Of a stretch of 64,000 nt of DNA, positions 1 to 40,951 are shown one piece after another (positions within the stretch are counted from its first letter, which is position 1; every line of letters begins with the position of its first letter). The notes under the pieces were generated by a model, which did not search any database, was not told where the DNA came from, and was given only the letters and a program-made list of their open reading frames with translations. Made by a program: the position numbers and the translations under genes. The stretch lies in sequence record NC_019526.1; one strand, written 5' to 3'.

Positions 1-222
1 GCACTTGACAGTGCTAATGGAAAATTATATAATTTCGATTCAATACAAGTAATTCAGGCTGGGATTGAAAGAGAATGTAGCAAATATAGTAGTACTGTAA
101 TGCGTTCGTATGCACTTGATGGTGATTACAACTCATTTAGTACCTTTTTACCTGGAAAAGATGTTTATTTAAAAGAACAGCTATTTGAAGATGTTCGACT
201 GTATTTGGGAGTACAAAAATGA
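1..222 (+). CDS. 3' end of a hypothetical protein running in from the left edge
   Basis: Frame 1 is open from base 1 (ALDSANGKLY...) to TGA at 220-222, overlapping the next ATG (ATGA coupling). Confidence 0.7.
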   Translation, partial: ALDSANGKLYNFDSIQVIQAGIERECSKYSSTVMRSYALDGDYNSFSTFLPGKDVYLKEQLFEDVRLYLGVQK

Positions 223-509
223 TTCTGTTTAACACCAATGCACTACATTGGGATGAAAATGAAAAAACTGGATTCAGGAAAATTTCAGTACTATATAAAT
301 CAAACAATGTATTGAATATTATTGCAAATAAAACGAATAATCAATGGATGACACAAGTGGTACCTATGGGTTATTCATATACAAAAGATGAAGTTGAATT
401 TCTTGTTGAATTGTACAAAATTATAGTACCTATTATGGATTTTTTAGAACAAGATATCGTAATGGAACATTCCGATGTTCTTGATTTTCTGGAATCCATA
501 AATGTCTAA
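219..509 (+). CDS. hypothetical protein (96 aa)
   Basis: ORF track; GGAG upstream; coupled to neighbours. Confidence 0.7.
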   Translation: MILFNTNALHWDENEKTGFRKISVLYKSNNVLNIIANKTNNQWMTQVVPMGYSYTKDEVEFLVELYKIIVPIMDFLEQDIVMEHSDVLDFLESINV

Positions 510-762
510 AATAGATATTTCATCTATATTCAATGAATCATGGCTTGAGCTTCGAGATGAACTGGCTATCATTGAATTTACTGAATTGTGGTTAATCAAG
601 AGCCAAAAAAAATTCTCAGTAGAATTAAAACATAAATTATATCACGCATATAAAAATTCTCTACCTTGTACCATTAAAACAAAAAACATTAATTACGATG
701 GTAAAATAATATACTTAGACGATGGTTGTATATTTTATCTAGTAAAAATTGAATACATTTAA
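502..762 (+). CDS. hypothetical protein, probable member of the small helix + beta-barrel family
   Basis: 86 aa; amphipathic N-half, beta-rich C-half (CTIKTKNINYDGKIIYLDDG). Confidence 0.65.
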   Translation: MSKIDISSIFNESWLELRDELAIIEFTELWLIKSQKKFSVELKHKLYHAYKNSLPCTIKTKNINYDGKIIYLDDGCIFYLVKIEYI

Positions 763-771
763 GGAATAAAA

Positions 772-1377
772 ATGAATACTAATAGTAATACTTATTTTCG
801 TTATCTACGTCTGGGTCTATCTCTTCGTCCAGTACGTGGTTATTGTGATGATCTGGAAGATTTTGAATACGCGTGGGCTGTTCATTGTGAAAATGTACAA
901 TACGTACTTAATGATTTTGGTGAATTTGAAAAAGATAATGATGCAACTTCAATGATGAATGCAATTGATAATCTTGATTGTATTGCTAATTCAGATCGTC
1001 ATGAAACAGTACTTGCAGTACAAAAATATATTGAAAGCAATCTGAGCAAGCCAGTTTGGTGCATGGTAAGCACTGAAGAACAACTTGGAATTACTTTTGG
1101 TACTGAAGATGGTTATGTTGCACAATTAATTATGGATTTTAGTACTGAAGAAAAATTCATTTCTTATCGTGATAAAATTTATCAAGCACTATTACGCAGT
1201 GGTATCAGTGAAGATCAAGTACCAGAAATTGCACCAATGAAAGATTTCTTCCTTATCCCAAGTGATGAAAAATATGATGCAATGTTTTATAAAATGAATG
1301 TGCCAGGTGTTATTGTTGAACATTTTGATGATGATAATACTGAGTGGTTGGACTTGGGTGATGACGAAGACGATTGA
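772..1377 (+). CDS. acidic hypothetical protein (201 aa)
   Basis: TAAGGA RBS; long ORF with phage-typical codons. Confidence 0.8.
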   Translation: MNTNSNTYFRYLRLGLSLRPVRGYCDDLEDFEYAWAVHCENVQYVLNDFGEFEKDNDATSMMNAIDNLDCIANSDRHETVLAVQKYIESNLSKPVWCMVSTEEQLGITFGTEDGYVAQLIMDFSTEEKFISYRDKIYQALLRSGISEDQVPEIAPMKDFFLIPSDEKYDAMFYKMNVPGVIVEHFDDDNTEWLDLGDDEDD

Positions 1378-1463
1378 TGATTTTTATTGCTTTATAGAAA
1401 ATACAACTGCACTATTAGAGTATTTTGACAATAATCCTTATCATAAAATATTAGTGCAGGTTT

Positions 1464-1787
1464 ATGATGATCTTTTTTATGAATATGGTAACTATTTTGA
1501 TTGGTTCGCACATCTTAGTACATAACTTTTTATTACTTCTTAATAACAAAATACAAATTAACTATATTTTCAGAGATGATCCTTTATATAAAAATGAAAT
1601 CTCTGATATATACAAGAATATGACAACTGAAATCTATCATTATTACATGAATAAAAAATTCAAGTGCTATTATATCAAAGCAATTGTAAAACCAGCAAGG
1701 TTATATATATGCACTAAAAATGATATGGTTAGTAAAGTTATAGATATCAAAGATTTAAAAGATGAGGTTCTTAGGGATGAATGGTAA
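1464..1787 (+). CDS. hypothetical protein (start uncertain)
   Basis: ORF track; C-half resembles the small paralogue family. Confidence 0.5.
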   Translation: MMIFFMNMVTILIGSHILVHNFLLLLNNKIQINYIFRDDPLYKNEISDIYKNMTTEIYHYYMNKKFKCYYIKAIVKPARLYICTKNDMVSKVIDIKDLKDEVLRDEW

Positions 1788-2094
1788 TGAATGTGTGAAA
1801 AAGAAAATAGAATTTATACAAATGACATGTAAGGTAATTTTCGATTTAGCACACAATACCAATATGCCAACCTTGTTCAAAGAAGAATTATTATTAAGTA
1901 CTGAGGTTATTTTTGAAGAATATTTCAGTACTAAATTATATTTAAAATATGGTAACTTTTACAAAATTCACGGCTTTACTATATGTAGTTCAAATGGAAG
2001 TGTCCATATTACAACTTCATACGGCTATTTCGAATTAACAGAAAGTACTGTAAAAAATTTATATGAATATCCATCAAAAATGAGAGTAAATTAA
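1762..2094 (+). CDS. hypothetical protein, small paralogue family
   Basis: ORF track; TAATG coupling to next gene. Confidence 0.6.
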   Translation: MRFLGMNGNECVKKKIEFIQMTCKVIFDLAHNTNMPTLFKEELLLSTEVIFEEYFSTKLYLKYGNFYKIHGFTICSSNGSVHITTSYGYFELTESTVKNLYEYPSKMRVN

Positions 2095-2294
2095 TGAAAA
2101 AATGTTCGTGTTGTGGATCTACTCAAATTGCACGTTTTCGATTAGATTCTGATTGGGCCGTTGGTTGTGGTGATTTCTACCCAGTTAATGATGATTCAGA
2201 ATATACTGAAGAACAACTGAAAGATTTTGATAATAGTTGGAGACCAGATTTTGAGTTTCTATATTGTTTGAATTGTAATTCGGTACAGGAATGA
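2094..2294 (+). CDS. small Zn-ribbon-like protein
   Basis: CSCCG near N-terminus and CLNCN near C-terminus. Confidence 0.65.
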   Translation: MKKCSCCGSTQIARFRLDSDWAVGCGDFYPVNDDSEYTEEQLKDFDNSWRPDFEFLYCLNCNSVQE

Positions 2295-2560
2295 TTAAAC
2301 CACATTATCATTGTATTCACTACTTAGGAACGACTATTTGTAATGAATTTACGAAAAATAAACATCATCAATTCAGTACTGTAATACGTGATATATTGTT
2401 ATACATTGAAAAAGAATTAACATTATTTTATAAAAATACCGTATATACTTATTGTAATAAAAAGTACAAAATACTCAATTTATCATTTGATGATAGAGGA
2501 TTTTTATATGTAATGAGTACTGAATATTATACTCATTTGGTTCTGCATACGGATTTATAA
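2291..2560 (+). CDS. hypothetical protein, small paralogue family
   Basis: FSTVIRDILLYIEKELTLFYKN aligns with YSLCIRSILDNIEDELNVLYTG of the next ORF. Confidence 0.7.
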   Translation: MIKPHYHCIHYLGTTICNEFTKNKHHQFSTVIRDILLYIEKELTLFYKNTVYTYCNKKYKILNLSFDDRGFLYVMSTEYYTHLVLHTDL

Positions 2561-2829
2561 TGAACAAACAATTATTATATTGTAAAGTGGTTTATTACTT
2601 GACTAATTCAGTACTGAATATGAATAACACACATTTTAACTATTCACTATGTATTAGAAGTATTTTAGATAACATAGAAGATGAACTAAATGTGTTATAT
2701 ACTGGAAAAACATTCACAAAAAACAATATCCGACACAAATGTAATGGTATTGTTATAACATATGGGCGTATATTTGCTTTATACGGTATACGTTACACTT
2801 GCTATTTTCATAGGGCTAAATTTAAATGA
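2560..2829 (+). CDS. hypothetical protein, small paralogue family
   Basis: Tandem paralogue of 2291-2560; same length (89 aa). Confidence 0.7.
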   Translation: MNKQLLYCKVVYYLTNSVLNMNNTHFNYSLCIRSILDNIEDELNVLYTGKTFTKNNIRHKCNGIVITYGRIFALYGIRYTCYFHRAKFK

Positions 2830-3443
2830 AAACAGATTATTCAAAACTAAGAACAAAACTTTATGGAATTATAGAGGGGCTATCTCTAATCGATCCAAAG
2901 TACTATGAATTGCGTCGTTTACTTGCATTCGCCGAACAATATCATTGTAATACACGAAAAGATGGTTCTGAAGAATTCTCTCATCAATTGCAAATGCTTG
3001 GATTGGCTCTTACGCTTCATGAATCGCTGTGTAAGCCGTTTGAAGTATACATGGCAATTGTATCTCATGATTTAATCGAAGACTATCCAGAAGCTTCTGA
3101 AACGCTTGAGATGTTATTCCCTGATGTAATCCAATATAGTCGTAAACTGGCTAAATTTAAAGATTCAAATACTGATGAAGATTCATACTATGGATACTTT
3201 AATCAGCTTTCTAATTGTCAAGTATGTTCAATTGTAAAACTAGTAGATAGAGTGCACAATTTGAGTACCGCACCTGGTGTATTCAGTACAGAAAAAATTA
3301 TAAGTTATTGTGATGAAACTGATAAGTATTTCTTTGATATGATAAAAAAATCCAAAGTTATGTTCAATCAGCGTTCAGCTTATGAAGTTCTAAAATTCAT
3401 GTTGAATACCGAAGTCAGTACTATCAGGAATTTATTAAAATGA
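2826..3443 (+). CDS. HD-domain (p)ppGpp hydrolase-like protein (SpoT/Mesh1-type small alarmone hydrolase)
   Basis: H-x3-RKDG...H...HDLIEDY...VKLVDRVHNL matches the RelA/SpoT hydrolase motif series. Confidence 0.75.
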   Translation: MKTDYSKLRTKLYGIIEGLSLIDPKYYELRRLLAFAEQYHCNTRKDGSEEFSHQLQMLGLALTLHESLCKPFEVYMAIVSHDLIEDYPEASETLEMLFPDVIQYSRKLAKFKDSNTDEDSYYGYFNQLSNCQVCSIVKLVDRVHNLSTAPGVFSTEKIISYCDETDKYFFDMIKKSKVMFNQRSAYEVLKFMLNTEVSTIRNLLK

Positions 3444-3646
3444 AAATAGTTTTAGAATTTGCATTTATTATTTTTGGTTTCATTTGGTTCACTGCTATTT
3501 CAATTTTTGCTGGATATCTCATTATTAAACCGGATATGTTGATTTTCTACTGGATTTTGACTTTAATTGCATTCATCAGTGTTGTCTGTTTGTCTTATAA
3601 ACTGGTATATCTATATGCAGATGAAATCAAAAAATATAACACTTAG
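3440..3646 (+). CDS. small two-TM membrane protein
   Basis: Two hydrophobic stretches in 68 aa; ATGA overlap. Confidence 0.7.
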   Translation: MKIVLEFAFIIFGFIWFTAISIFAGYLIIKPDMLIFYWILTLIAFISVVCLSYKLVYLYADEIKKYNT

Positions 3647-3679
3647 TTGGCTTTATGTTGAAAAGATTTAAAATCGATA

Positions 3680-4482: not shown

Positions 4483-4488
4483 TTAGCA

Positions 4489-4522
4489 GTCCAGTACAAT
4501 ATAAGTACTGGACATTTTTTTT
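4489..4522 (+). terminator. intrinsic terminator
   Basis: GTCCAGTAC-N7-GTACTGGAC followed by ATTTTTTTT. Confidence 0.8.
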
Positions 4523-10872: not shown

Positions 10873-11175
10873 TTGATGAATAAAATAAATGATGTATACC
10901 ATACTTGGGAAATGCTTTTTGACTTAACTGATGATTTTTATCCAGGTAACTATTCAAATGTTTATTCTGAAGTATATAAAAATTATTTTTCAGTACTGAA
11001 TGGTTATATCAAAGGAACTAAAGTTGAACTTATAATATCATATTCAATGAGTCCTTCAAAACTAGGAACCATTAAATCAATAAATGTGACACCATTTGGA
11101 ATAAAATTTAAAATAGAACTGGATCATAATTCAGAAATTTTTTTCAGTGAATATTATGAAATAAAAGAATATTAA
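10873..11175 (+). CDS. hypothetical protein, small paralogue family
   Basis: Paralogue of 9074-9340. Confidence 0.7.
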   Translation: MMNKINDVYHTWEMLFDLTDDFYPGNYSNVYSEVYKNYFSVLNGYIKGTKVELIISYSMSPSKLGTIKSINVTPFGIKFKIELDHNSEIFFSEYYEIKEY

Positions 11176-16806: not shown

Positions 16807-16829
16807 TAGAGAGTACTAAGTACTCTCTA
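16807..16829. promoter_or_regulatory. perfect 10-bp hairpin between an AGGA RBS and the ATG of 16837 (or terminator)
   Basis: TAGAGAGTAC-TAA-GTACTCTCTA. Confidence 0.55.
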
Positions 16830-17444: not shown

Positions 17445-18269
17445 ATGAAAGTAACAGGAAAGGGAAATCAGAAGGATGACCTATTTCATATAGATAAGTT
17501 TTTAAATACTGGTAAATTTTTACCAGGAACAATATTTTCTCGTTCAACTACTAGACAAAAGAACAATAAAGGTGTAATATCATATCCATATTGGAATTAT
17601 AAATGCCCCAAATGTTCACATGATGAATTTGTTGAACATGGTTTATGTTCTGGTGTATTCGAAGGTGAATGTCAAAAACTAAAATTAGGAAAACGTAATT
17701 GTAGATGTGCTCCGACATATAGGTGGACACAAGAACAACGAGAATATCAAATACAAAAAGAAATCGATGAACGTGGTCTAGAAAATTATTTTATTGGATG
17801 GGTTGATCCTGAAGGATATAAAAATAATGGAAGTAAAATTATAATTGGATGTATAAATTCAGATGATGATGGTACCCAACATAAAAGTTATACTATAGCA
17901 ATAAATGATTTTCTCCATGGTCATAAAGGTTGTGCTAAATGTGCTGGTCAAACACAAAAACATGCATATATAAATGTTGTATATAATGAAAATAAACCAG
18001 TAGCTATAAAATTTGGAATTGCAAATGCACCACACATAAGGATTGAATTTCAAAATAGTAAAAATTTATATAAGATGGTTCAACCGCACATTTACAAATT
18101 TTTCAGTACTGAACAATGTAAAGATGCTGAACGATATTGTAAATCAATTTATAAAAATGTTTTAACAAAAGAACAACTATTTGATGGTTATACTGAAACC
18201 ACACTATTGGAAAATATAGAAAATATTATTCAAATCTATGAAAAATATGGTGGAATCAGAACAAAATAA
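17445..18269 (+). mobile_element. putative free-standing homing endonuclease (Zn-finger N-terminus; C-terminal GIY-YIG/T5orf172-like domain)
   Basis: CPKC, CRC and GCAKC cysteine clusters; KFGIANAPHIRIEFQN...GYTET C-terminus; sits between unrelated genes. Confidence 0.6.
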
Positions 18270-20821: not shown

Positions 20822-21345
20822 TATATCATTTAACTGAAGAACAAAGTACTGAATACTTTAACAATTTAGAAGCGGTTCTGGACTATCATAAAAAAATTCA
20901 TACAGATGCATGTAATATTTTAAATTCTTGGTATACTTTTTATAAACTGAATTTTAATAACCTACCATGGTATATGAAATTTGGTGTTTTATCATATAAA
21001 AAGTTTTTAGCATCTATTGCTAACGATACTGGGTTAGAAATAAGAAATAAAATGTATCAATATGTAACACCACGCAATATGTCTGGATGGGTTTATAAAT
21101 TAAAAATTAATAAAATCCAAAAATTAACTGGTATTGATTTAAGTACCGAAAGTATAAATTTGGTAATTCATGCAATGCATTTTGGTTTACAATATGATAG
21201 TATGTATGATTTGTATAGAACATTAGAAAAAATAAAAAAATATGGTTCAATTCCATATACTATTGATGAATATGATTTGAAAATTTTTGAACATGTATCA
21301 TTTTTAGTACAACATTATAATATAGAGAAATATAATGAAGCATAA
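20818..21345 (+). CDS. hypothetical protein (175 aa)
   Basis: ORF track; ATGA coupling. Confidence 0.75.
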   Translation: MIYHLTEEQSTEYFNNLEAVLDYHKKIHTDACNILNSWYTFYKLNFNNLPWYMKFGVLSYKKFLASIANDTGLEIRNKMYQYVTPRNMSGWVYKLKINKIQKLTGIDLSTESINLVIHAMHFGLQYDSMYDLYRTLEKIKKYGSIPYTIDEYDLKIFEHVSFLVQHYNIEKYNEA

Positions 21346-21805
21346 AACATGGTTAAATATTGCTAAAGCGGTTGCAGAGGAAAGTAAATGTATTTCACAC
21401 AAAGTTGGTGCAGTAATTGTAAAGAATAACAGGATTCTCAGTACTGGGTATAATGGTACAAGTTCTGGGGCAGTTAATTGTTGTGATGCGAATAGTCATT
21501 TAATTCATAATAATGAATTTCAAAATTGGGTATCAGATGAAGCTAAACATGAACATCATGAGTGGAGTAATATTCATGAAATTCACGCAGAAATGAATGC
21601 TTTATTGTATAGCTCTCCACAAGAACGACAGGGTGCAACTCTTTATAGTACAATGCAACCCTGCTATACCTGTTCTAAATTAATTGCAGGAAGTGGTATT
21701 ACTAATGTAATTTATGAAAAAGAATACCCACGTACACCACCCGAAGCAATTGAAGTTTTAAAAGATGCTGGTATTACAGTTAATAAATTATCAGATTTGG
21801 AATAA
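21335..21805 (+). CDS. cd: dCMP deaminase
   Basis: S-C-x-x-x-KVGAV, TGYNG, HAEMNA and PCYTC motifs. Confidence 0.9.
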   Translation: MKHKTWLNIAKAVAEESKCISHKVGAVIVKNNRILSTGYNGTSSGAVNCCDANSHLIHNNEFQNWVSDEAKHEHHEWSNIHEIHAEMNALLYSSPQERQGATLYSTMQPCYTCSKLIAGSGITNVIYEKEYPRTPPEAIEVLKDAGITVNKLSDLE

Positions 21806-24416: not shown

Positions 24417-25442
24417 ATGTTCATAATGTATAGAATAATAAAAACTGATTATAATTATGATTTTTATTATATGTTACCACAAGATATAATCAATTATAAT
24501 TCTAGATATCAAGAACCACAAAAATTGATAGATAATATTAATAATATAAAAATACAAAATTTAACTGTTATTGGTTTTTTTATAAAACATGAAAATGAAT
24601 ATAAAGCAACCAAAACAAAAATTTTAGTTGCATATCATAATATATATTACATCATATTATATAATAATTTAATTAGTACTGGTAAGTTTACTGGAAGAGT
24701 AGAATGTAATAATGAAAATATATATTATTACTTATATTCAAAAAGACCACTAAGTACTAACCATTTAGAAATTATTGATATACCAAATAAAAAGAAAATA
24801 CGAGCTAAAGATTATATTAAAGTTAGATGTACTAAAGATGGACATGAATATTATATAACATTAAATAAATTCTTTCAAAATAAAAAATGTCCAAAATGCA
24901 CTAATCAAATAGCTTATGATATGTATAATTTAACAAAATTTGTTTATCAAAAAAGACCACCCGAATATACTGGTATATACATAACATATATACCATTTAA
25001 TATTAATGGCAAAGATGATTATTTATATTTGAAATGTTCTTATTGTGAAACTGAATGGAATACAACAAATATTCATTCTTATGTGAACGGAGGAACTGGT
25101 TGTCCTCATTGTAAAATATCCAAAGGTGAACGAAAAATAAAGGAACTATTATTACATAATAATATAAAATTTGAATTTCAAAAAAAATTTAAAAATTGTA
25201 GAAACAAAAAACAATTACCATTTGATTTTTTTATTAATGATGTAAATGTTCTAATAGAATATGATGGTATACAACATTTTCAACCTGTTGAAATATTCGG
25301 TGGAAATAAAAATTATGAACAAACATTGAAAAATGATCAAATTAAAAATCAGTACTGTAAAGATAACAACATCAGACTGATAAGAATTCGTTATGATGAA
25401 GACCCAAAAGAAATATTGACGCGAGAGGGTATCATCAAGTAA
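24417..25442 (+). mobile_element. putative free-standing endonuclease (Zn-finger repeats plus C-terminal DUF559/Vsr-like PD-(D/E)xK domain)
   Basis: CPKC, CSYC and GCPHC clusters; LPFDFFINDVNVLIEYDGIQHF; very AT-rich; inserted between the two NAD genes. Confidence 0.75.
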
Positions 25443-27575: not shown

Positions 27576-28316
27576 TTGATGATTAGTACTAAATTCATTA
27601 AAAAAGCTGGTGATAAAAGATTACTAATCATTTCTGGAAATGGATTGTCAATGGATAGTGGTTTTGACTTATATGACATTCCTGATAATTTTCAGATAAA
27701 TGATGTGTGTAATATTGCCAGTTTAGGTACAAAATATCACGTAGTTCATTCTTATTATAATACTCTTAGAGTTAAATTAAAAGATATTGAACCAAACGAA
27801 ATGCATTACTATATTAAATCATTACAAGATGAGTATGGTGATAACTTTTTACACATGACCAGTAATGTAGATGATTTATATACAAGAATTGGTGGTACCG
27901 AATTAAAATTGCATGGTAATATTAAAGAGGTTATAGAAAACTATACCGCTGATGGTTCTGAAATAGAAATAAAAGAATTAGGTTATGAACCATATATTCC
28001 ATGTAGTGGTATTTTTTCTAAACCAGGTGTTACATTAATTGGTGAGTTCCATAGTTATTTTTATGGATATAAAATCCCAATTTATGAAGAACGAAATGAA
28101 ATACTAAAATCATTAAATGAAAATGATACTGTAGTAGTAATTGGAAGTTCTGATTCAGTACTGAAATGGAGCCATTTAATAAATGAGAAATGTTACACAG
28201 TACTAATCAATATAAGAAAAAATGAAAACGATCATCGTTTCAATGAACGAATTTATAAATCTTGTTCCAAATCTGTATTAGATTTATCTGGAATAATTTC
28301 AAAAAGGATGGTATAG
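27576..28316 (+). CDS. divergent Sir2/sirtuin-family protein
   Basis: SGNGLSMDSG (GAGxS), TSNVDDL (TQNVD), LHGN, KPGVTLIGE, VIGSS and INI motifs. Confidence 0.75.
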   Translation: MMISTKFIKKAGDKRLLIISGNGLSMDSGFDLYDIPDNFQINDVCNIASLGTKYHVVHSYYNTLRVKLKDIEPNEMHYYIKSLQDEYGDNFLHMTSNVDDLYTRIGGTELKLHGNIKEVIENYTADGSEIEIKELGYEPYIPCSGIFSKPGVTLIGEFHSYFYGYKIPIYEERNEILKSLNENDTVVVIGSSDSVLKWSHLINEKCYTVLINIRKNENDHRFNERIYKSCSKSVLDLSGIISKRMV

Positions 28317-31479: not shown

Positions 31480-31504
31480 AGTACTGTAATTATATTACAG
31501 TACT
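31480..31504. repeat. 11-bp inverted repeat containing two AGTACT sites
   Basis: AGTACTGTAAT-TAT-ATTACAGTACT. Confidence 0.8.
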
Positions 31505-32710: not shown

Positions 32711-33567
32711 ATCATATTACTGAAGAAAAAATTCTATATCACGCATTACATAATGGATCATTTACTTTACAAAGTTGTGATTATATTGGTCATACTCAGA
32801 CATGTATTGATAACCTTTTGAAGTGTAAATTTCTTACATGGGAAACTAATAGTTTGTGGAGTGATTATAAACATAATGATAGTTCTGAATATTATGACAT
32901 AGCATTTCATCAGTATAAAATCACCGAAACAGGTGAAGTTCGTTTAGCCATTTATCGTTTAGCTTATGCACATAAGAATCACAGAGATACTTCTAAACAT
33001 GTGAAAAGGATGGAACAATTAACAAAAGTATTGAAACAGTATTCTCTGGATATTGATAACTTCAAAAAGAATTGTACTAAAAATGAAGTGAAAGCAATTA
33101 ATTATTATAAAGAAAACTATAATAAAACGGTTTATATTGAAGAAGCGAAAGCTGTCGGTGATACATTAAAACAAGCTATTCATCCAGTATTCAGTACTGA
33201 AAAAATTCAATCCAAAAATTCTCATCTAAATGATATTGATTTCGGTGATGTAGTACTTAATAATATGTTCCAAATGAGTTCTATGCTTGGTGAAAAAGGT
33301 TATGATAAATCCAGAACATGGGATTATGTTCTTCGTAAAATTAATGAAGAATTGGGTGAAATGACACTTGAAATGAATGTAGCAGATGGGTTATCATATA
33401 AAGAAGCAGGGAAAGATGGTGTAAAAGGTGAAGCCGTTGATTTAGCAATTTGTGCTATGGATATGTTTGCATTGGAATGTCCAGGTATGAGTGCTGATGA
33501 AATTGAGCGTGAATTTTTAACATACATGAACATCAAACTAGCTAAATGGAGAAAGTCAATACAATGA
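32707..33567 (+). CDS. unknown N-terminal domain fused to MazG-like NTP pyrophosphohydrolase
   Basis: C-terminal KINEELGE...KGEAVDL (EExxE...ExxD). Confidence 0.7.
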   Translation: MNHITEEKILYHALHNGSFTLQSCDYIGHTQTCIDNLLKCKFLTWETNSLWSDYKHNDSSEYYDIAFHQYKITETGEVRLAIYRLAYAHKNHRDTSKHVKRMEQLTKVLKQYSLDIDNFKKNCTKNEVKAINYYKENYNKTVYIEEAKAVGDTLKQAIHPVFSTEKIQSKNSHLNDIDFGDVVLNNMFQMSSMLGEKGYDKSRTWDYVLRKINEELGEMTLEMNVADGLSYKEAGKDGVKGEAVDLAICAMDMFALECPGMSADEIEREFLTYMNIKLAKWRKSIQ

Positions 33568-34421: not shown

Positions 34422-35624
34422 ATGAAACTTTGTAAGCATTGCCAGAAACCAAAATTCAAACATCAACGTGAAACACTGAATTGTCCAAGTCCAACTCGTT
34501 CATTGGCTGCGAATTTTAATAGTACAACTGTATATGATGAATATGAATCCGATCCAGTACATTATGCTATTGCACAAGTACAATTGAAAGCTGATATTGC
34601 TGAAATTACTGCTGGTCTTGATGAACTTCTTGCTAAAGGTGATATTAACGAGCAATCATATAAAATGAATTTAGCAAATGCAACTGCCAATCTTACTCGT
34701 ATTGCTGAAAATAGCAAGCGACCAGAAATTACAGAATCTAATTCAGTACTGTATGTTTCTTTTAACGATGTGGTGTATTTTTATGATGCACAATGGGAAG
34801 GAAATGCAGTACTAGAAGGTGAAAAAGCAGTAGAAGATTTATATTTTTCTGATAAATTCAAAGAATATTATGATGCTGGTATTGTACCAGTATTAGAAGT
34901 GCTAGATAATGAAAGCACTGAAATGATTAAAGTAATTTATAATGCAGAACGTGTTGAATTTATTTCTGATATTAGTCGTGATGAACATTTGAAAGAAAAA
35001 GATACAAAACAAGAAGAAGTATCTTTATCTGATTTGAATAATGATGATTTTGTACTTCCATTGCATGATAAACAATGGGTACTAAATACTATTCGAAAAA
35101 ATTCTGACGATGATTGTGATGTTGAAGAACTTGAATGTGCATTGAAAAGCTGTGATGGATCTATTGTTCTTGGTAAACCAGATACAGAAAACGATGGAAC
35201 TTATCTAATGCTTGGTATGAAAACCAACGATGGTTTCCTTGAAAATGATTACTGTCTTCTTAATAACATTTTGCTTAAAGATTGGAGTGTACTTGAAAAT
35301 TCAGGGTTGATTGAAATTGGTACTTTTGAAAGCCACATTGACATTGATGAAAGCAAAAATAAAGGCATTACTACTTTTATGTCTGAAGTAATTGCACGTT
35401 CATTATTCAGTACTGAAGCATTGGATATCAAAAGTACGGATGATTGTAAAGCATTCTTGAAATCAGAATACAATGTACAAAAAGCAAAACGCATCAAGAA
35501 AGAAAAATGGGGTAAAATTGAGTACCGAATCTTTGAAGATGATAATGGTGAACAGTATACTATTGTCACTTACTGTGATAAGTTGATTTCACATTATCCA
35601 TTTGCTTACAATGAGGATTATTAA
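34422..35624 (+). CDS. acidic hypothetical protein (400 aa) with N-terminal Cys/His motif
   Basis: CKHC-x6-H-x6-C N-terminus; long ORF. Confidence 0.8.
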   Translation: MKLCKHCQKPKFKHQRETLNCPSPTRSLAANFNSTTVYDEYESDPVHYAIAQVQLKADIAEITAGLDELLAKGDINEQSYKMNLANATANLTRIAENSKRPEITESNSVLYVSFNDVVYFYDAQWEGNAVLEGEKAVEDLYFSDKFKEYYDAGIVPVLEVLDNESTEMIKVIYNAERVEFISDISRDEHLKEKDTKQEEVSLSDLNNDDFVLPLHDKQWVLNTIRKNSDDDCDVEELECALKSCDGSIVLGKPDTENDGTYLMLGMKTNDGFLENDYCLLNNILLKDWSVLENSGLIEIGTFESHIDIDESKNKGITTFMSEVIARSLFSTEALDIKSTDDCKAFLKSEYNVQKAKRIKKEKWGKIEYRIFEDDNGEQYTIVTYCDKLISHYPFAYNEDY

Positions 35625-36241: not shown

Positions 36242-36898
36242 ATGAATATTAAAACAACAGCAGATAAGTACTGGTTCATTATGAACCATCCAAAATTTGT
36301 AAATAAAAATTACATTGTACCAAAAATCGAAATTGAACCACATAATGTATGTCCACAAACCAACAGAATTGAATCGTATGAATATTTGAATACAAAAGTC
36401 CAGTACTGGATTGAATTTTATATCCCAGTGCAAGAAGATGGGAAATGGGAAATTGCACATGATTACAAACTCGATTGTGGTGGCGACACCATAGATGAAG
36501 CAATTGACTGCTTATATAATTCAGTACTAAATGAATATGGAAATTATACACAAGAAGAACTTGACAAAAAGGAGGATGAAGTATATAATTACAACAAATC
36601 CAAGTTTGGTAGTGCAACAATGTCATATATTTTATCTAAAATTCATGAAGACATGTTTGAATACGTAAATGATAAAATTTTGCCAGATGAAGAAGCGGAA
36701 TGCTATAATCATAACACGGTTGGTTATTATGAAAAAAAAATTAAAGAATTAAAAGGAACTTTAAATTCATTGATCGAATTCAAAAGAAATTCACCAAAAG
36801 AAATGCACAAAGTAATTGACAAAGATATAAAAAACGTAGAACATGACATTTTTGCGAATGAAATGAGTATTAAATTTATGGTGGATTTGGATCTATGA
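36242..36898 (+). CDS. hypothetical protein (218 aa)
   Basis: ORF track. Confidence 0.75.
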   Translation: MNIKTTADKYWFIMNHPKFVNKNYIVPKIEIEPHNVCPQTNRIESYEYLNTKVQYWIEFYIPVQEDGKWEIAHDYKLDCGGDTIDEAIDCLYNSVLNEYGNYTQEELDKKEDEVYNYNKSKFGSATMSYILSKIHEDMFEYVNDKILPDEEAECYNHNTVGYYEKKIKELKGTLNSLIEFKRNSPKEMHKVIDKDIKNVEHDIFANEMSIKFMVDLDL

Positions 36899-37263
36899 AT
36901 AAAGATCTTTCAAAATTAGTTGAAGACCTACGGAATATGCCGAAAATTGAACAAGTTGGTTCGTTTAAACGTTTCTTAGTTATTGCACGTGCATTAGATA
37001 AAAAGGGACGTGTACTCAGTACCAAAACCAATTCATACACACAAACACATCCAGTACAGAAGAAGTTTGCAGTTAGGGCTGGACGGTGTGAAGCTGTATG
37101 GCTCCATGCAGAAATTCGTTGTTTGTTAGCTGCAAGAAAAGATGTTCATACATTACTAATTGCCAGAATTAACAAAGAAGGTCTTCCTGTTCCAGCAAAG
37201 CCATGTTCTGTTTGTGAACTGGCTATAAAAGAATATGGTGTAAAAAGGGTGATTTATACATGA
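36895..37263 (+). CDS. small cytidine-deaminase-fold Zn protein
   Basis: WLHAEIRCL and KPCSVC (HxE...PCxxC). Confidence 0.75.
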   Translation: MNKDLSKLVEDLRNMPKIEQVGSFKRFLVIARALDKKGRVLSTKTNSYTQTHPVQKKFAVRAGRCEAVWLHAEIRCLLAARKDVHTLLIARINKEGLPVPAKPCSVCELAIKEYGVKRVIYT

Positions 37264-37433: not shown

Positions 37434-37561
37434 TGCGTGATCTTATTATGTTCTTTTCTGCAATCATAGGATTATGTACTTATTATTTTTCCAATCATTA
37501 TATTATAGCTATGGTATTTGCAATTATATATATTGCACTTTACAGTACTGACGACGAATAA
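37433..37561 (+). CDS. small membrane protein (42 aa, not in track)
   Basis: TAATG overlap; MRDLIMFFSAIIGLC...ALYSTDDE*. Confidence 0.55.
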   Translation: MRDLIMFFSAIIGLCTYYFSNHYIIAMVFAIIYIALYSTDDE

Positions 37562-37584
37562 AAGCACCCTAGTGGTGCTTTTTT
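37561..37584 (+). terminator. intrinsic terminator
   Basis: AAAGCACC-CTAGT-GGTGCTTT-TTT. Confidence 0.8.
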
Positions 37585-37718
37585 CCATTTGTACAAAATA
37601 TAATCTAAGTGACTTTTTATTGATTTAAATCAAGAATAAAATCACCTTTTAGTGATATAATATGTTACGTAGCATTTAAATAAATCTACCACATAATAAA
37701 AAAAATCAAGGAAGAAAA

Positions 37719-39524
37719 ATGAATTCAAATAAATTATATGAAGATATTGAAAATTTTATTAATAATACAAATAAAGATATTACTACTGAAAATGCTAATA
37801 AAGATGCCAAAGTAGTTAATACACATAGAGATTTATTTGCTGGTATCCTTTCTAAACATTACGCCCAAGATACTATCCCAGAAGAATTTATTAAATGGCA
37901 CAATGATGGTTATGGACACTGCCACGATTTAGATTACTGGATCTCACCATTAACAAATTGCTGCCTTATTAATTATCCAGATATGCTTAGAAATGGTTTT
38001 AAAATTGGTAGTGCTAACATTGAAGAACCAAAAAGTTTTTCTGTGGCTTGTACGGTACTAACACAGATTGTGCAAGCGGTTGCAAGTTCACAATATGGTG
38101 GACAATCATTAGCTCACATTGACAAATATTTAGAACCATATGTTCAAATGTCATGGAATAAACTATTAGAAAAACAAAAGAAATATAATTTAAGTACCGA
38201 ATTCATTGAAGACGAATTAAAAAAAGAAGTTTATGATGGGTGTCAAACATTTTTATATCAATTAAACAGTACTGTGTCCGTGTCAGGTCAAACCCCTTTC
38301 ATATCTATTAGTTTAGGTTTAAGTACTACTAAATTTGGACGTTTAATTACTGAACAATATTTAAAAGTTCATGAAAAAGGTTTAGGTAAAGATGGCATTA
38401 CTCCAGTATTTCCGAAAGTTATTTTCTTTTTAGAAGATGGTATTAATACTAATAGTACTGATCCAAATTATGATTTAAAACAACAAGCATTACATTGTAG
38501 TTCTAAAAGAATTTATCCTGATTTCGTTAGTGTTACATTGAATAAAGAAACCACAGGTAGTACTTCTGAAGCTGTTACTCCAATGGGTTGTCGTTCATTC
38601 CTTTCCAAATGGATAAATGAAGATGGTGAAGAGCAATATAATGGCCGCTGCAATTTAGGGGTGGCATCAATCAACCTACCGTTAATCGCTCTTGAAAGTA
38701 CGTCAGACGACGTTTTCTTTGACAAGTTACACCATCACATGGACATGGCATATCGCTTCTTATCGCTTCGTGTCGAGCGTTTAAAAGGCACAAAAGCCCG
38801 ACAGAATCCAGTACTGTACATGTACGGAGCCTTAGCTCGTTTAGATCCAGATGAGACTATTGAGCAACTATTTTACAATGGCAGAAGTTCCATTAGTATT
38901 GGGTATGTTGGTTTATCTGAATGTTCTGAAATTCTTAAAGGAAAAATAGACAAAGATTTTGGATTAAAAGTACTAAAATATATGCAAATGAAATGCAATC
39001 AATATAAAGAAGAAACTAATATCGCATATAGTTTATATGGAACACCAGCCGAAAGTTTGTGTTATAAATTTGCAAAAATTATTAATGAGAAATACCCCTC
39101 TGTATTGAATAGAGATTACATTAGTAATTCATTTCATTATCCAGTTCATTATGATATTTCAATTTTCGATAAATTTCAATATGAAAGTTTATTTGGAAAT
39201 ATCAGTTCAGGTGGTAATATTAGTTATGTTGAAACTCCAAATCTTTCTAATAATTTAAAAGCATTAGAAACTATAGTTGATTATGCCAGTATGAAAGTAC
39301 AATATTTCGGTATCAATCAACCAGTTGACCACTGCTATAAATGTGGATATGATGGTCAGTTCAACGTAGATAAAAATGGATATAATTGCCCACACTGTGG
39401 TAATAATGATGAAAGTACTATATCAGTTATTAGACGTGTTTCAGGTTATCTTGGTGCACCAAATAGTCGCCCATTCAATAAGGGGAAACAAGCCGAAGTG
39501 ATCGAAAGAATTCGTCATATGTAA
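37719..39524 (+). CDS. nrdD: anaerobic (class III) ribonucleotide reductase
   Basis: HCHDLDY, NCCL, QYGGQS, PMGCRS, GRCNLG, Zn site CYKC...CPHC and glycyl-radical RRVSGY. Confidence 0.95.
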   Translation: MNSNKLYEDIENFINNTNKDITTENANKDAKVVNTHRDLFAGILSKHYAQDTIPEEFIKWHNDGYGHCHDLDYWISPLTNCCLINYPDMLRNGFKIGSANIEEPKSFSVACTVLTQIVQAVASSQYGGQSLAHIDKYLEPYVQMSWNKLLEKQKKYNLSTEFIEDELKKEVYDGCQTFLYQLNSTVSVSGQTPFISISLGLSTTKFGRLITEQYLKVHEKGLGKDGITPVFPKVIFFLEDGINTNSTDPNYDLKQQALHCSSKRIYPDFVSVTLNKETTGSTSEAVTPMGCRSFLSKWINEDGEEQYNGRCNLGVASINLPLIALESTSDDVFFDKLHHHMDMAYRFLSLRVERLKGTKARQNPVLYMYGALARLDPDETIEQLFYNGRSSISIGYVGLSECSEILKGKIDKDFGLKVLKYMQMKCNQYKEETNIAYSLYGTPAESLCYKFAKIINEKYPSVLNRDYISNSFHYPVHYDISIFDKFQYESLFGNISSGGNISYVETPNLSNNLKALETIVDYASMKVQYFGINQPVDHCYKCGYDGQFNVDKNGYNCPHCGNNDESTISVIRRVSGYLGAPNSRPFNKGKQAEVIERIRHM

Positions 39525-39599
39525 TCTATATAAAAACGACTAAATGAATAAGTGATAATGTAGAATATAAATGTAATTATCAAAAATAAGGAGTCAATT

Positions 39600-39962
39600 A
39601 TGACAATTAAAGCAAAACAAATTTTATCAGGCGAACATACTGGAACAATCTTTTTACACGATGATGAATATGCACGTATTTTAGTATCAAAAACATTTTC
39701 AGAAGATGATGAAGTATTATTCAGTACTTTTGAAAATGAAGAAATGCGTGAAGTTGATATTCAAGAACAACCAAAAATTGAAGGTGGTCAACATTTAAAT
39801 GTAAATGTATTATCACGTTCTCAATTAGAAGAAGCACAGAAATTTCCTGAAAAATATCCTCAACTTACTATTCGTGTTTCTGGATATGCAGTTCGTTTTA
39901 ATTCTCTTACGAAAGAACAACAAAATGATGTAATTTCACGAACTTTCACTACTAAGTTCTAA
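39600..39962 (+). CDS. grcA: autonomous glycyl radical cofactor
   Basis: [10 protein letters not shown]...[34 protein letters not shown]. Confidence 0.92.
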
Positions 39963-39966
39963 TGTA

Positions 39967-40314
39967 ATGTTTTTTGAATATAATGATGAAAATATATATC
40001 CAATCGTGGTTAATAAGTATAAAGAACCATATGATGTATATATTGGAAGAGGTTCAAAATGGGGTAATCCGTTTACTCACATAAAAAATCGTGATACGAA
40101 AGCTGAGTTTATTGTCAATACCAGAGAAGAATCTATTTCAAAATATAGAGAATGGATATTTAATAAAATTGAAAATGGTGAAATTACCATTGATGAGTTA
40201 CTAGAATTATCTGGTAAAAAATTAGGATGTTTTTGTAAGCCTAAATCATGTCATGGTGATGTTCTTGTGGAAATAGTGAGTGCATTATTAGATGAATTAT
40301 CAAACAATAATTAA
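39967..40314 (+). CDS. DUF4326-family protein
   Basis: DVYIGRGSKWGNPF...GKKLGCFCKP...CHGDVL. Confidence 0.85.
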   Translation: MFFEYNDENIYPIVVNKYKEPYDVYIGRGSKWGNPFTHIKNRDTKAEFIVNTREESISKYREWIFNKIENGEITIDELLELSGKKLGCFCKPKSCHGDVLVEIVSALLDELSNNN

Positions 40315-40762
40315 AGATGACTTAATAAATGGGGAGGGAGTTAGATGCTCCCTTTTTGTTTCGGGATGTTCAATGGGTTGTAAAAATTGCTACAATGAAA
40401 AAGCATGGGATTATAGAAGCGGTACTGAATTCGGTACTGAACAAGTCAAACTGATACTAAATGAATTATCTAAATCATATGTATCTGGTTTATCATTACT
40501 TGGTGGCGATCCACTTGCTCTTAAAAATTGCAGTACTGTAATCGAACTATGTAAAGTTGTTAAAGAAAAATACCCAGACAAAACCATTTGGTGTTGGAGT
40601 GGTTTCACACTTGATGAAATTATAAATAATCATGCAGCCTCTATATTAGAATATATTGATGTTCTTGTCGATGGTAAATTTGAAGAAGAACTAAAAGACT
40701 TATCACTTCCATATAGAGGTTCTAGCAATCAACGTATTTTATATAAAGGGAAAGATTTCTAA
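40292..40762 (+). CDS. nrdG: NrdD-activating radical SAM enzyme
   Basis: NGEGVRCSLFVSGC; CxxxCxxC (CSMGCKNC); LLGGDP; RGSSNQ. Confidence 0.93.
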   Translation: MNYQTIIKDDLINGEGVRCSLFVSGCSMGCKNCYNEKAWDYRSGTEFGTEQVKLILNELSKSYVSGLSLLGGDPLALKNCSTVIELCKVVKEKYPDKTIWCWSGFTLDEIINNHAASILEYIDVLVDGKFEEELKDLSLPYRGSSNQRILYKGKDF

Positions 40763-40923
40763 TGAAATATAGTGATTTGATTACTGAAAAAATTCGTAAA
40801 CGTGGTGATAAGTGGGAAGTTACTGACAGTACTGGTAAAAAGGTATTGGGTACACATCCAACACATGAAGAAGCACTTAAACAACTTCGTGCAGTAGAAT
40901 GGTCTAAGCACGGTGGTAAATAA
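40762..40923 (+). CDS. small conserved-type phage protein (53 aa, not in track)
   Basis: TAATG overlap with nrdG; IRKRGDKWEV...KVLGTHPTHEEALKQLRAVEWSK. Confidence 0.7.
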   Translation: MKYSDLITEKIRKRGDKWEVTDSTGKKVLGTHPTHEEALKQLRAVEWSKHGGK

Positions 40924-40924
40924 T

Positions 40925-40951
40925 AAAAGCCTCCATATATGGAGGCTTTTT
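40925..40951. terminator. bidirectional terminator between convergent units
   Basis: AAAAGCCTCCA-TATA-TGGAGGCTTTT. Confidence 0.88.

Follow-up and report, generated by a model that had tools for sequence, protein, structure and literature searches.

AGTACT, with CAGTACTG as its optimal form, is read here as a double-stranded-DNA recognition word specific to the RaK2/121Q/GAP32 clade of jumbo phages; most likely a putative phage protein binds it and thereby marks the DNA of the phage as its own. The stretch of 64,000 nucleotides analysed here (the window) is the final 64 kb of the genome of Klebsiella phage vB_KleM_RaK2. Within the window AGTACT was found 162 times against 14–22 expected, whilst the complete genome (346 kb) holds 937 sites, one per ~400 bases. 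Ranked by over-representation, it comes first among the 4096 hexamers in the window (an order-1 Markov model expects 14, z = 39; an order-3 model expects 67, z = 11.6), and its genome-wide enrichment over the order-1 model is 11.9-fold (~12-fold), rising to 82-fold for the CAGTACTG octamer. The 180 hexamers of the same composition have a median of 18 copies in the window, the runner-up (81 copies) overlapping AGTACT, and the 23 further palindromes of this composition occur 1–36 times each. A preliminary description of this DNA had proposed a HIP1-like, highly iterated palindrome saturating the resident (‘core’) phage DNA, and the proposal is supported: the counts given then (about 30, 30, 35 and 28 per 10 kb over 1–40 kb, about 160 in total) became 30, 30, 35, 29 and 162 when recounted, and the mononucleotide expectation of 3–4 per 10 kb became 3.4. 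The word is ~45 times denser in the phage than in sampled host-type DNA. No report of iterated AGTACT in RaK2-type phages was found in the literature.

Codon or amino-acid bias is insufficient to account for the excess, as had been argued before. When synonymous codons were shuffled within each gene of the window, 42.8 ± 5.3 coding sites were obtained as opposed to the 145 observed (z = 19.4); the excess was 3.1-, 5.5- and 3.6-fold in frames 0, 1 and 2, respectively (87, 12 and 46 sites versus 28, 2.2 and 12.7), and intergenic density (4.1/kb) is higher than coding density (2.4/kb). The order-of-magnitude excess of a short perfect palindrome thus persists after both Markov and codon correction, as in HIP1-type iteration, and the word lies inside and between open reading frames without restriction to a single frame. 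Two checks proposed beforehand, the codon-preserving shuffle and the comparison with matched hexamers, returned a z-score far from zero and no equal enrichment, and therefore neither refutes the AGTACT signal: the iteration is confirmed as real and is stronger than first stated. It comes at a cost, in that dipeptide usage is skewed and protein sequences are altered. AGTACT encodes 87 of the 191 Ser-Thr dipeptides, and the FSTE peptide, whose recurrence had already been pointed out, occurs 5 times versus 0.27 expected. This use of Ser-Thr, together with the 60% of coding sites that lie in frame 0 (AGT ACT) and the tRNA-Ser(GCU) and tRNA-Thr(UGU) carried by RaK2, would suit a cause at the level of translation or RNA, namely an AGU-ACU codon pair favoured by phage tRNAs, or an RNA motif. 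Such a cause is highly improbable: the other two frames are themselves 3.6–5.5-fold enriched after the shuffle, intergenic DNA is denser in sites than coding DNA, the AGTACT flanking the -35 box (see below) sits upstream of the transcription start, and codon usage offers no rationale for a flank preference that is itself palindromic (C at -1, G at +1). The enrichment of all frames after synonymous shuffling largely refutes it.

The preferred word is about 8 bp long. CAGTACTG occurs 247 times genome-wide versus 3.0 expected, and 41 times in the window versus 3.0 in the codon-shuffle analysis. Information content ends at ±1, where C is favoured and G avoided at -1, the reverse holding at +1, and the logo is symmetric and of the dimer type, with half-site effects. 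At least six perfect 12-mers, against about 0.01 expected, had been reported for the window; there are indeed six copies of TTCAGTACTGAA (0.007 expected), which translate as F-S-T-E in frame 0. The 12-mer does not hold as the unit, however, since specificity spans about 8 bp and the TTC/GAA flanks are a weak extension of it (TTC being the commonest flank, at 154 of 937 sites). Genome-wide, none of the one-mismatch neighbours of AGTACT is depleted: outer-position neighbours, GGTACT, AGTACC and AGTACA among them, are enriched 2.8–4.3-fold, inner-position neighbours stand at ~1.1–2.2-fold, and for the deamination products AGTATT and AATACT the observed counts are 1.0–1.7 times the expectation.

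The features of the window that bear on the distribution of the word are as follows.

1..40950, dense AGTACT array of 126 sites (~3.1/kb) across ~77 plus-strand genes and their spacers
2607-2618, 10989-11000, 18102-18113, 28154-28165, 33190-33201 and 35406-35417, the perfect 12-mers TTCAGTACTGAA
4489..4513, plus strand, terminator-like hairpin GTCCAGTAC-AATATAA-GTACTGGAC with a stem of AGTACT motif halves, then a T-run
16807..16829, 23-bp palindrome TAGAGAGTACTAAGTACTCTCTA of two adjacent AGTACT copies, directly 3' of the DNA ligase gene and terminator-like on either strand
17445..18269, plus strand, ORF488, homing-endonuclease-like with a CapR homology domain (AGTACT 1.2/kb, GTAC 2.4/kb, GC 28.6%)
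24417-25442, ORF499, with treble-clef and CapR domains (GC 22%, GTAC low at 3.9/kb; AGTACT ordinary at 2.9/kb, 3 sites)
31480..31504, inverted pair AGTACTGTAAT-TAT-ATTACAGTACT with 11-bp arms, in the spacer 3' of ORF507
40955..56898, minus strand, seven tail-fibre/depolymerase genes, motif-poor (19 AGTACT, 1.2/kb)
48592..48607 and 56435-56450, 16-bp palindromes TAACCAGTACTGGTTA and AAACCAGTACTGGTTT, respectively, in N-terminal portions of tail-fibre genes
56981..63873, plus strand, three tail-fibre genes, the first two with AGTACT mostly in the N-terminal quarter

The genes of the dense array serve nucleotide metabolism, ligation and NAD salvage and include many small open reading frames; AGTACT density is alike (2.9/kb) whether or not a gene has an Asteriusvirus orthologue. 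The low motif content of ORF488 would fit a mobile gene of recent arrival. The limit at 40950 drawn in the preliminary description does not stand, as AGTACT is again present at 56–64 kb and where the tail-fibre genes encode N-terminal regions. Between 40955 and 56898 it is almost confined to the N-terminal, virion-anchoring thirds, and across nine tail-fibre genes its density is 2.80/kb in the N-terminal 35% versus 0.38/kb in the C-terminal 65% (p = 5e-11); the last tail-fibre gene (61807-63873) carries 11 sites throughout (5.3/kb). The C-terminal parts are unlike among RaK2, K64-1 and Muenster, and AGTACT is nearly absent from these horizontally swapped depolymerase modules.

A fixed position for the word has been found at early promoters. 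Seventeen predicted early sigma-70-type promoters of RaK2 (consensus matches at 216–244 kb of the genome, outside the window) carry two AGTACT copies exactly 20 bp apart that adjoin the -35 and -10 boxes, in the form AGTACTTGACA-N9-yCAGTACTGTATAAT, so that the copies stand in fixed register with the promoter hexamers, as phage operators do. The same two-site layout is present in 121Q, in a Serratia-BF-like relative and in metagenomic contigs of 354–371 kb. AGTACT is absent from the sigma-70-like promoters outside the early region, and in early-region coding DNA its density is doubled. Of the candidates listed in the preliminary description, the site of a DNA-binding protein is therefore the one favoured by the new evidence, because the word stands in fixed register at this subclass of early promoters.

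Along the 346-kb genome the sites are spaced more evenly than those of any other of the 144 abundant hexamers, with a dispersion index of 0.71 in 2-kb bins (median 1.22), and under-dispersion was seen across bins of 1–5 kb; there is no AGTACT-free 2-kb bin in 286 kb, and gaps between sites never exceed 2.3 kb. Even spacing and palindromy are equally compatible with a replication or recombination signal. As an alternative, AGTACT might be a priming, nicking, loading or Chi-like site for T4-type machinery, needed once per kilobase or so, with the palindrome serving forks and exonucleases in both directions. The even sub-kilobase spacing fits this, as does selection on density and not on individual positions; RaK2 encodes a gp61/gp41 primase-helicase, UvsX/UvsW, gp46/47 and a RecB-like exonuclease, and a clade-specific word could co-evolve with a clade-specific replication enzyme. 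We nevertheless regard this alternative as unlikely, as it leaves unexplained both the fixed register at -35 and -10 and the doubled coding density of the early region; moreover, known primase sites span 3–5 nt and can do without enrichment, and sites of the Chi kind lack symmetry.

Conservation of the word is detectable and weak. Among close relatives, 53 of 892 sites were changed as opposed to 91.5 expected from controls in the same gene and phase (z = -4.5, ratio 0.58), and intergenic sites gave a similar ratio (10 versus 16.3, 0.61). Mismatches per position numbered 9–15 inside sites and 12–33 in the flanks. Conservation above matched control sequence, a mark of HIP1-type words, is thus present in a weak form. 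The synonymous third positions of AGT|ACT showed no measurable conservation (20 changes versus 23.2 expected), so per-site selection is weak at best. Positions turn over between genera whilst density stays constant: in 31 orthologue pairs with 54 and 52 sites, 16 (30%) are shared in position. Gains and losses among close relatives are roughly balanced (937 versus 945 sites). This balance, the unconserved third positions and the lack of the signature in recently imported DNA would all be expected if the phage polymerase or repair system mutated DNA with a neutral, context-dependent bias that left a functionless, lineage-specific genome signature. We consider that very unlikely, given that sites change 0.58 times as often as matched controls (intergenic sites included), that such a bias predicts Poisson or over-dispersed spacing, that no one-mismatch neighbour is depleted and that the exact promoter placement is kept across genera. 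The earlier suggestion that a sequence-specific process maintains the motif is borne out by the reduced rate of change (~0.6-fold), the even spacing, the absence from recent modules and the presence in the whole clade.

Iterated AGTACT is common to the RaK2/121Q/GAP32 clade, always with zero GCGC (0 in the 346 kb of RaK2), and is absent from PA5oct, a Vibrio relative and Atu_ph07. As had been anticipated from the depletion of palindromes by phages, PA5oct and a phi92-like coliphage each have 0 AGTACT where ~11 are expected, which suggests restriction on the word, from which the ~940 sites of RaK2 would need protection. AGTACT is identical to the target of ScaI (and isoschizomers), and GTAC to that of RsaI and CviQI. 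Complete avoidance in PA5oct and the phi92-like coliphage is as expected of a restriction target, whereas the RaK2 clade accumulates the word instead; a type II target should be avoided or protected by a cognate methylase, yet in RaK2 AGTACT is enriched 12-fold, no gene for a cognate methylase or nuclease was found and no ScaI-type N4-cytosine methylase is annotated. A methyltransferase acting on GTAC/AGTACT, coupled to mismatch-specific repair that turns near-sites into sites (a drive of the HIP1/VSP type), would let the word accumulate without any usefulness of its own. In its favour are the zero counts in other phages, the DNA-modifying enzymes of RaK2 (C5-methyltransferase ORF194, PF00145; Dam-family ORF447, PF05869, just upstream of the window; Mom-family ORF149) and the report that RaK2 DNA is cut by methylation-insensitive restriction enzymes only (PMC3622015). 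This drive, the first of the candidates named previously, is not supported and now seems improbable. None of the near-sites, deamination products among them, is depleted. ORF194 aligns along its entire length with the DNMT3A/3B catalytic domain (E = 1e-22), which is of the CpG type and in keeping with the CpG methylation reported for RaK2 (PMC3622015), whilst AGTACT contains no CpG, and a 45% homologue of it is found in phi92-like phages with zero AGTACT. Repair also leaves unexplained the under-dispersed spacing, the 20-bp promoter register and the bias against G at -1 and C at +1, and known VSP-type effects (Dcm/Vsr) are far below 12–82-fold.

The abundance of AGTACT despite its protein cost, together with its bracketing of early promoters, makes it probable that the word is bound by a phage protein. 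The explanation that we tentatively put forward, at a little less than even confidence, is a genome-wide, weakly selected array of sites for a putative dimeric phage DNA-binding protein. A homodimeric, sequence-specific protein would recognise AGTACT, and optimally CAGTACTG. Bound as at an operator, it would regulate the early promoters, most simply as a shut-off repressor occluding both hexamers. The ~900 remaining copies would be retained because their density and spacing are under selection that is weak at each site, and would load the same putative protein on all resident phage DNA every few hundred bp; the loading may serve a process of ~0.5–2 kb range, be it coating/compaction, nuclease protection or titration-based timing. 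Pfam scans of 33 RaK2 proteins (among them the larger hypothetical open reading frames of the window and proteins encoded next to the phage sigma factor; ~500 proteins lay outside the scan) gave no helix-turn-helix regulator or repressor domain. A binding array of this kind would also place some 1000 operator-like sites inside genes, where they could be roadblocks to transcription; this speaks against it.

Several known systems resemble this array in part. HIP1 (GCGATCGC) is 15–300-fold over-represented in cyanobacterial chromosomes, and no role for it in gene regulation was found (PMC5861425); it contains GATC and CGATCG methylase sites (PMC4390886). Like HIP1, the RaK2 word is a hyper-abundant perfect palindrome of ~8 bp (12-fold as a hexamer, 82-fold as an octamer) that lies inside and between open reading frames in all frames, is conserved above matched controls and is distributed non-randomly along the genome. 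HIP1-type words are periodic on a scale of 10–90 kb; the spacing of AGTACT was analysed at 1–5 kb. The two differ in sequence ((C)AGTACT(G) in RaK2, where GCGC is absent) and in carrier, HIP1 being borne by cellular chromosomes and AGTACT by a lytic phage genome. Parts of HIP1-type words are read by orphan methyltransferases, whereas the RaK2 methylases (PF00145, PF05869) and the Mom-family protein have no assignment to GTAC/AGTACT, and AGTACT, unlike HIP1, keeps a set position in one class of promoters.

The E. coli SlmA site GTGAGTACTCAC is a 12-bp palindrome that occurs at scattered places in the chromosome and is the target of a dimeric TetR-family protein; its six-base core is identical to AGTACT (PMC3020112). 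Because the core is shared, phage DNA might be thought to hijack this host nucleoid-occlusion factor and so block host cell division, and the motif-bearing phages do infect mostly Enterobacterales, which possess SlmA. There is, however, scant likelihood of this. SlmA needs G1, T2 and a purine at 3, and its essential flanks (GTR-AGTACT-YAC) are disfavoured in RaK2: no base stands at -1 less often than G (66/937), GTR and YAC are 2.5–3-fold depleted (11 and 9 versus 27.7 expected) and a single full SlmA site is present. SlmA sites number tens per 4.6 Mb, as opposed to ~940 copies of the RaK2 word per 0.35 Mb, and the Vibrio relative lacks iterated AGTACT.

The stoperators of mycobacteriophage L5, one example of dispersed phage repressor sites, are a single protein-binding word placed as an operator at an early promoter and in many copies scattered through the genome, and the RaK2 word likewise combines early promoters with scattered copies. 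Stoperators are asymmetric, orientation-dependent, mostly intergenic, a few dozen in number and borne by temperate phages, whereas the RaK2 word is palindromic, mostly intragenic and present in ~940 copies in a virulent phage. Chi and DNA-uptake words share with it the character of an over-represented 8–12-mer that distinguishes ‘own’ DNA and is kept as a density, not at fixed positions; they are asymmetric, strand- or orientation-biased and read by RecBCD or the uptake machinery, whilst AGTACT is a perfect palindrome, so that no orientation is possible. If the binding reading is true, the AGTACT array would mark the phage's own DNA by way of a putative phage protein.

The window is 100% identical to positions 281,810-345,809 of Klebsiella phage vB_KleM_RaK2, a jumbo myovirus (genus Alcyoneusvirus; 345,809 bp) related to T4, and its genes lie in three blocks:

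Window 1-40,950, + strand: about 77 genes, including RNA and DNA ligases, polynucleotide kinase, NAD-salvage enzymes, PhoH, NrdD/G and many small ORFs
Window 40,955-56,898, - strand: seven tail-fibre/depolymerase genes
Window 56,981-63,873, + strand: three further tail-fibre genes

Within the first block, ORF518 (window 36895-37263) carries a cytidine/deoxycytidylate deaminase zinc-binding domain and is a second deaminase beside the annotated dCMP deaminase (21335-21805). A perfect sigma-70 consensus (TTGACA-17 nt-TATAAT) is found at window 5-33, within ORF448 and without flanking AGTACT, and no Rfam families were found in the window.

The palindrome AGTACT occurs 162 times in the window, with 30, 30, 35 and 29 copies per 10 kb across the first 40 kb, which bears out the counts of the preliminary description, as does a computed mononucleotide expectation of 3.4 per 10 kb. 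Its optimal form of about 8 bp is CAGTACTG; TTCAGTACTGAA would be an alternative duplex that carries the word, and GAGTACTC a control for it. Amongst all 4096 hexamers it is the most deviant (162 copies versus an order-1 expectation of 14.1 and an order-3 expectation of 66.9). The 180 hexamers of the same composition have a median of 18 copies, and the 23 palindromes among them besides AGTACT range from 1 to 36, which rules out an equal enrichment of matched words. Synonymous shuffling within each gene alters neither the proteins nor the codon usage (which the motif itself inflates), and reduced the 145 coding sites to 42.8±5.3 (z=19.4); all reading frames are enriched, with 87, 12 and 46 sites in frames 0, 1 and 2 versus 28.2, 2.2 and 12.7 in shuffled genes. 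In the coding DNA of the window CAGTACTG has 41 copies, versus 3.0 after shuffling. Nor is the word inflated by paralogous repeats: the commonest 12-mer context recurs just six times, and the sites thus have unique surroundings.

The pressure for AGTACT extends to protein sequences. Ser-Thr, Val-Leu, Gln-Tyr and Gly-Thr dipeptides are over-represented 1.5-1.8x in the window proteins, and AGTACT encodes 87 of the 191 Ser-Thr pairs, against a share of about 13% predicted from codon usage. Codon, amino-acid or codon-pair bias is nevertheless ruled out as the cause by the synonymous and codon-permutation shuffles and by the higher density of intergenic (4.1 per kb) versus coding DNA (2.4 per kb), as had been claimed earlier for codon and amino-acid bias. 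Any explanation at the level of codons, translation or RNA fails on the same shuffles and intergenic enrichment, and on the presence of sites upstream of promoters. The tRNA set of RaK2 (178.3-182.1 kb, outside the window; 28303-32119 of L007, a piece of the whole record) includes tRNA-Ser(GCU), which reads AGY and together with tRNA-Thr(UGU) serves both codon families of frame-0 AGT-ACT, and these tRNAs may be a consequence of the motif and not its cause. ARAGORN also places in this set a tRNA-Met(CAT) that is missing from the RefSeq annotation.

The fall in density past 40,950 is no strand effect, since AGTACT is a palindrome. In the conserved virion anchors, which make up the N-terminal 35% of nine tail-fibre genes, AGTACT stands at 2.80/kb, whereas the receptor-binding/depolymerase modules of the C-terminal 65% have 0.38/kb, near the compositional expectation (p=5e-11), and those same C-terminal parts are the regions that differ among RaK2, K64-1 and Muenster. 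The tail-fibre/depolymerase genes at window 40955-61778 are mosaics, in which the anchors bear the AGTACT signature and the enzymatic modules lack it. ORF488 (window 17445-18269; CapR homology domain, GC 28.6%) is homing-endonuclease-like and AGTACT-poor; ORF499 (window 24417-25442; treble-clef zinc finger and CapR domain, GC 22%), likewise homing-endonuclease-like, is low in GTAC yet has an ordinary AGTACT density of 2.9/kb. Both look like DNA-binding proteins of homing-endonuclease descent. Small ORFan and conserved genes are equal in density (2.9/kb each), so that ‘young’ ORFans are not the poorer, and the motif-poor set consists only of the depolymerase modules and ORF488. The contrast between anchors and modules, the poverty of ORF488 and the equality of the ORFans together indicate that AGTACT is a signature gained by DNA during residence in the lineage. 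Its density is thus a sensitive marker of module residence time in phages that are used for capsule-depolymerase mining and therapy research, and could locate the junctions of tail-fibre modules.

The remaining RaK2 record was also analysed, giving figures for the whole genome: 937 AGTACT (2.7/kb) versus an order-1 expectation of 79, 247 CAGTACTG versus 3.0, and 2520 GTAC versus about 900-1000. Outside the early region the word is spaced more evenly than any of 143 other abundant hexamers, with an index of dispersion of 0.71 in 2-kb bins (lower-tail p=0.004; control median 1.22) and not one empty 2-kb bin in 286 kb. Density is flat along genes, dips at ribosome-binding sites and shows a slight excess right after stop codons.

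Turnover of individual sites is considerable. In 31 orthologue pairs of RaK2 and slurp01 (60% amino-acid identity), there are 54 and 52 AGTACT, of which 16 share a position, and the lineage-specific sites are mostly found where the amino acids differ too. In the 316-kb alignment of RaK2 with OU509535 (1.9% divergence), 53 of 892 sites have changed, where hexamers matched for gene and codon phase predict 91.5 (z=-4.5); because just two isolates are compared, this test reflects polymorphism as much as fixed divergence. The ratio of change is about 0.6 in intergenic DNA (10 versus 16.3 expected) and in frames 0 and 2, and mismatches per position number 9-15 within the sites versus 12-33 in the flanks. 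The synonymous third positions of AGT-ACT show no significant conservation between these two genomes (20 changes versus 23.2 expected); this, and the 70% of positions that are unshared with Asteriusvirus, rule out strong purifying selection per site. Taken together, conservation and turnover indicate a moderate constraint on AGTACT as a class, weak at each site, with turnover at constant density, and selection, if any, would be weak per site and would act on density. Even, dense and weakly selected copies across the genome point to a function that depends on coverage.

The logo of the 162 window sites is short and symmetric, with C at -1 in 84 and G at +1 in 77, an avoidance of G at -1 and C at +1, and little information beyond. 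The perfect 12-mers reported in the preliminary description are present, six in the window and 34 in the genome, and are accounted for by a TTC/GAA flank preference that is weak genome-wide. Palindromic extension past ±3 bp occurs in just 16 of the 937 sites, and an extended hairpin or cruciform is thereby rejected as the usual form. Being self-complementary, each copy can pair with any other, so AGTACT yields ready-made hairpin stems; some RaK2 5'-UTR hairpins and several terminator-like hairpins are composed of the palindrome or of pairs of it. In the window, the stems of three terminator-like hairpins are formed by two copies or halves of AGTACT:

Window 4489-4513: terminator-like hairpin
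Window 16807-16829: terminator-like hairpin
Window 31480-31504: terminator-like hairpin

Genome-wide, the one-mismatch neighbours that differ at outer positions (GGTACT, AGTACC, AGTACA and TGTACT) are enriched 2.3-4.3x and those that differ at inner positions about 1.1-2.2x, a pattern that, judged from word counts, would be expected from half-site recognition by a dimer. No one-mismatch neighbour is depleted in the RaK2 genome, which excludes VSP-like T-to-C conversion and argues against a modification-linked drive, in which a methylase with biased repair would build up the word. That candidate of the preliminary description also finds no support in ORF194 (outside the window; L007 16708-17601), a 297-aa C5-cytosine methyltransferase whose full-length alignment to mammalian DNMT3A/3B catalytic domains (E about 1e-22) greatly surpasses those to M.HaeIII or M.HhaI. 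The alignment fits the CpG methylation that has been reported for RaK2 (PMC3622015). Homologues of ORF194 are 62-66% identical across the RaK2/121Q/GAP32 clade and 45% identical in phi92-like phages with zero AGTACT, and this distribution, with its CpG type, excludes it as an AGTACT methylase. ORF447 (phage Dam family, PF05869) and ORF149 (Mom family) have specificities that are unreadable from sequence, so modification of AGTACT in RaK2 is possible; as one of the two main rivals, a modification-linked drive is nonetheless unlikely.

Relatives were sampled as stretches of 19-50 kb, OU509535 excepted. Enrichment is found in this second Alcyoneusvirus (945 sites), in Escherichia phage slurp01 (Asteriusvirus; 138 sites in 50 kb), in Cronobacter phage GAP32 and Xanthomonas phage XbC2 (Mimasvirus), and in the early regions of 121Q, a BF-like contig and several metagenomic contigs of 354-371 kb. 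GCGC is missing altogether: zero copies in the window (about 19 expected), zero in the 345,809 bp of RaK2 (120-215 expected), and zero in OU509535, slurp01, GAP32, XbC2 and all 15 clade IMG/VR loci. CGCG is ordinary in RaK2 (115 versus 104 expected), and CTAG, AGCT and GGCC are likewise depleted. Distant relatives, with capsid proteins 56-72% identical, show neither the AGTACT enrichment nor the GCGC absence: PA5oct (71,850-101,010) has 0 AGTACT in 29 kb versus 10.7 expected, Vibrio phage 2.275.O has 4 versus 8.7 and Atu_ph07 has 3 versus 3.5, and GCGC is present in all three and in the phi92-like phage C3, which has zero AGTACT versus about 11 expected. The zero counts in PA5oct and C3 suggest that other phages are under real pressure from ScaI-type restriction, and against such complete avoidance the build-up in the RaK2 clade stands out all the more. 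In a 50-kb sample of E. coli K-12 there are 0.06 AGTACT/kb and 6.8 GCGC/kb; the word is thus about 45x rarer in host-type DNA than in phage DNA, where it occurs once per about 400 bp. The absence of GCGC suggests a GCGC-specific nuclease, either encoded by the phage against host DNA or belonging to a pervasive host restriction system, and this nuclease or restriction pressure is worth identifying. Outside the window, RaK2 ORF290 (L008 11210-11890) is a Serratia-type non-specific DNA/RNA endonuclease (PF01223, E=8e-37), and a phage that makes such a nuclease needs to shield its own DNA in some way.

The word has a second, positional use. Its density peaks at 6-8/kb at RaK2 215-245 kb, where small early ORFs lie (coding 4.3, intergenic 11.3/kb). 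There and nearby (216,000-244,000) lie 17 promoters of sigma-70 type, aaAGTACTTGACa-N9-yCAGTACTGTATAATgt, which are consensus matches with unmapped starts. Two AGTACT stand exactly 20 bp apart, one abutting or overlapping the -35 hexamer and the other abutting the -10; no other distance between sites comes near 20 bp in frequency (19 pairs). One such dual-site promoter is at RaK2 227479-227511. Downstream of these promoters lie a 5'-UTR hairpin, G-rich/C-rich and conserved, and an AAGGA ribosome-binding site. Scanning IMG/VR for the exact pattern brought up 15 clade loci with this architecture, and it is kept in 121Q, BF-like and metagenomic relatives. The sigma-70-like promoters elsewhere in RaK2 are without AGTACT, so those with two copies form a distinct subclass. 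For the relative CBB, 18 RpoD-like early promoters have been described; neither the CBB paper nor the RaK2 paper mentions the palindrome or the absence of GCGC, and no paper linking AGTACT to RaK2-like or jumbo phages was found in literature outside subscription journals. At RaK2 225,500-226,200, repeated Fur-box-like sequences, GAGAATGATAATGATTCTCATT, adjoin AGTACT-bearing promoter-like elements; no genes are annotated over the surrounding 1.5 kb, which may represent an iron-responsive promoter or a small RNA.

The register at the promoters suggests a transcription regulator, and Pfam scans of 33 RaK2 proteins gave no candidate for one. Of the mechanisms weighed, AGTACT is best regarded as a double-stranded DNA word read by a symmetric protein. 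That a single putative dimeric DNA-binding protein serves both the promoter and the genome-wide roles is plausible, and we favour it tentatively; the other main rival, a replication or recombination signal, is as unlikely as a modification-linked drive. In kind the closest system is HIP1 of cyanobacteria, a hyper-abundant palindrome of about 8 bp in all frames that is conserved by selection (PMC5861425, PMC4390886). The likeness to HIP1 drawn earlier holds in kind, with four differences: the RaK2 word is unlike HIP1 in sequence, is carried by a lytic phage, has no cognate methylase identified and occupies a set position in one class of promoters. The E. coli SlmA site shares the AGTACT core and requires GTR/YAC flanks (PMC3020112); these sequence-defining flanks are disfavoured in RaK2, which excludes a SlmA-site array. 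Restriction targets differ in sign, as RaK2 accumulates its word, and Chi, uptake sequences and mycobacteriophage stoperators are asymmetric. On these grounds AGTACT is filed amongst iterated genomic words and outside any named family.

A broader and rather unlikely proposal is that the RaK2/121Q/GAP32 clade uses a two-word self/non-self code on unmodified bases, GCGC versus CAGTACTG. GCGC would mark DNA for destruction by a phage nuclease, and CAGTACTG would nucleate a phage protein to coat, organise or protect all resident phage DNA; binding would also shut the double-operator early promoters as the protein accumulates or as replicating genomes titrate it. If true, this would be a phage counterpart of chromosome marking (HIP1, Chi, SlmA/Noc sites) and a new mode of timing early transcription.

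Phages are textbook avoiders of palindromes, and here an entire clade of 350-kb lytic phages accumulates one, to the extent of biasing Ser-Thr, Val-Leu and Gln-Tyr dipeptides. To our knowledge, the function of HIP1 is unsettled after three decades of work. The question is tractable in the phage, with imported depolymerase modules as a negative control, well-defined limits of the clade, a further, positional role at early promoters, coliphages of the clade that grow on laboratory E. coli, and a small genome that lends itself to pull-down, methylome and reporter assays. A positive result would reveal that jumbo phages possess a new global DNA-binding factor or a new system for marking DNA, and might shed light on HIP1.
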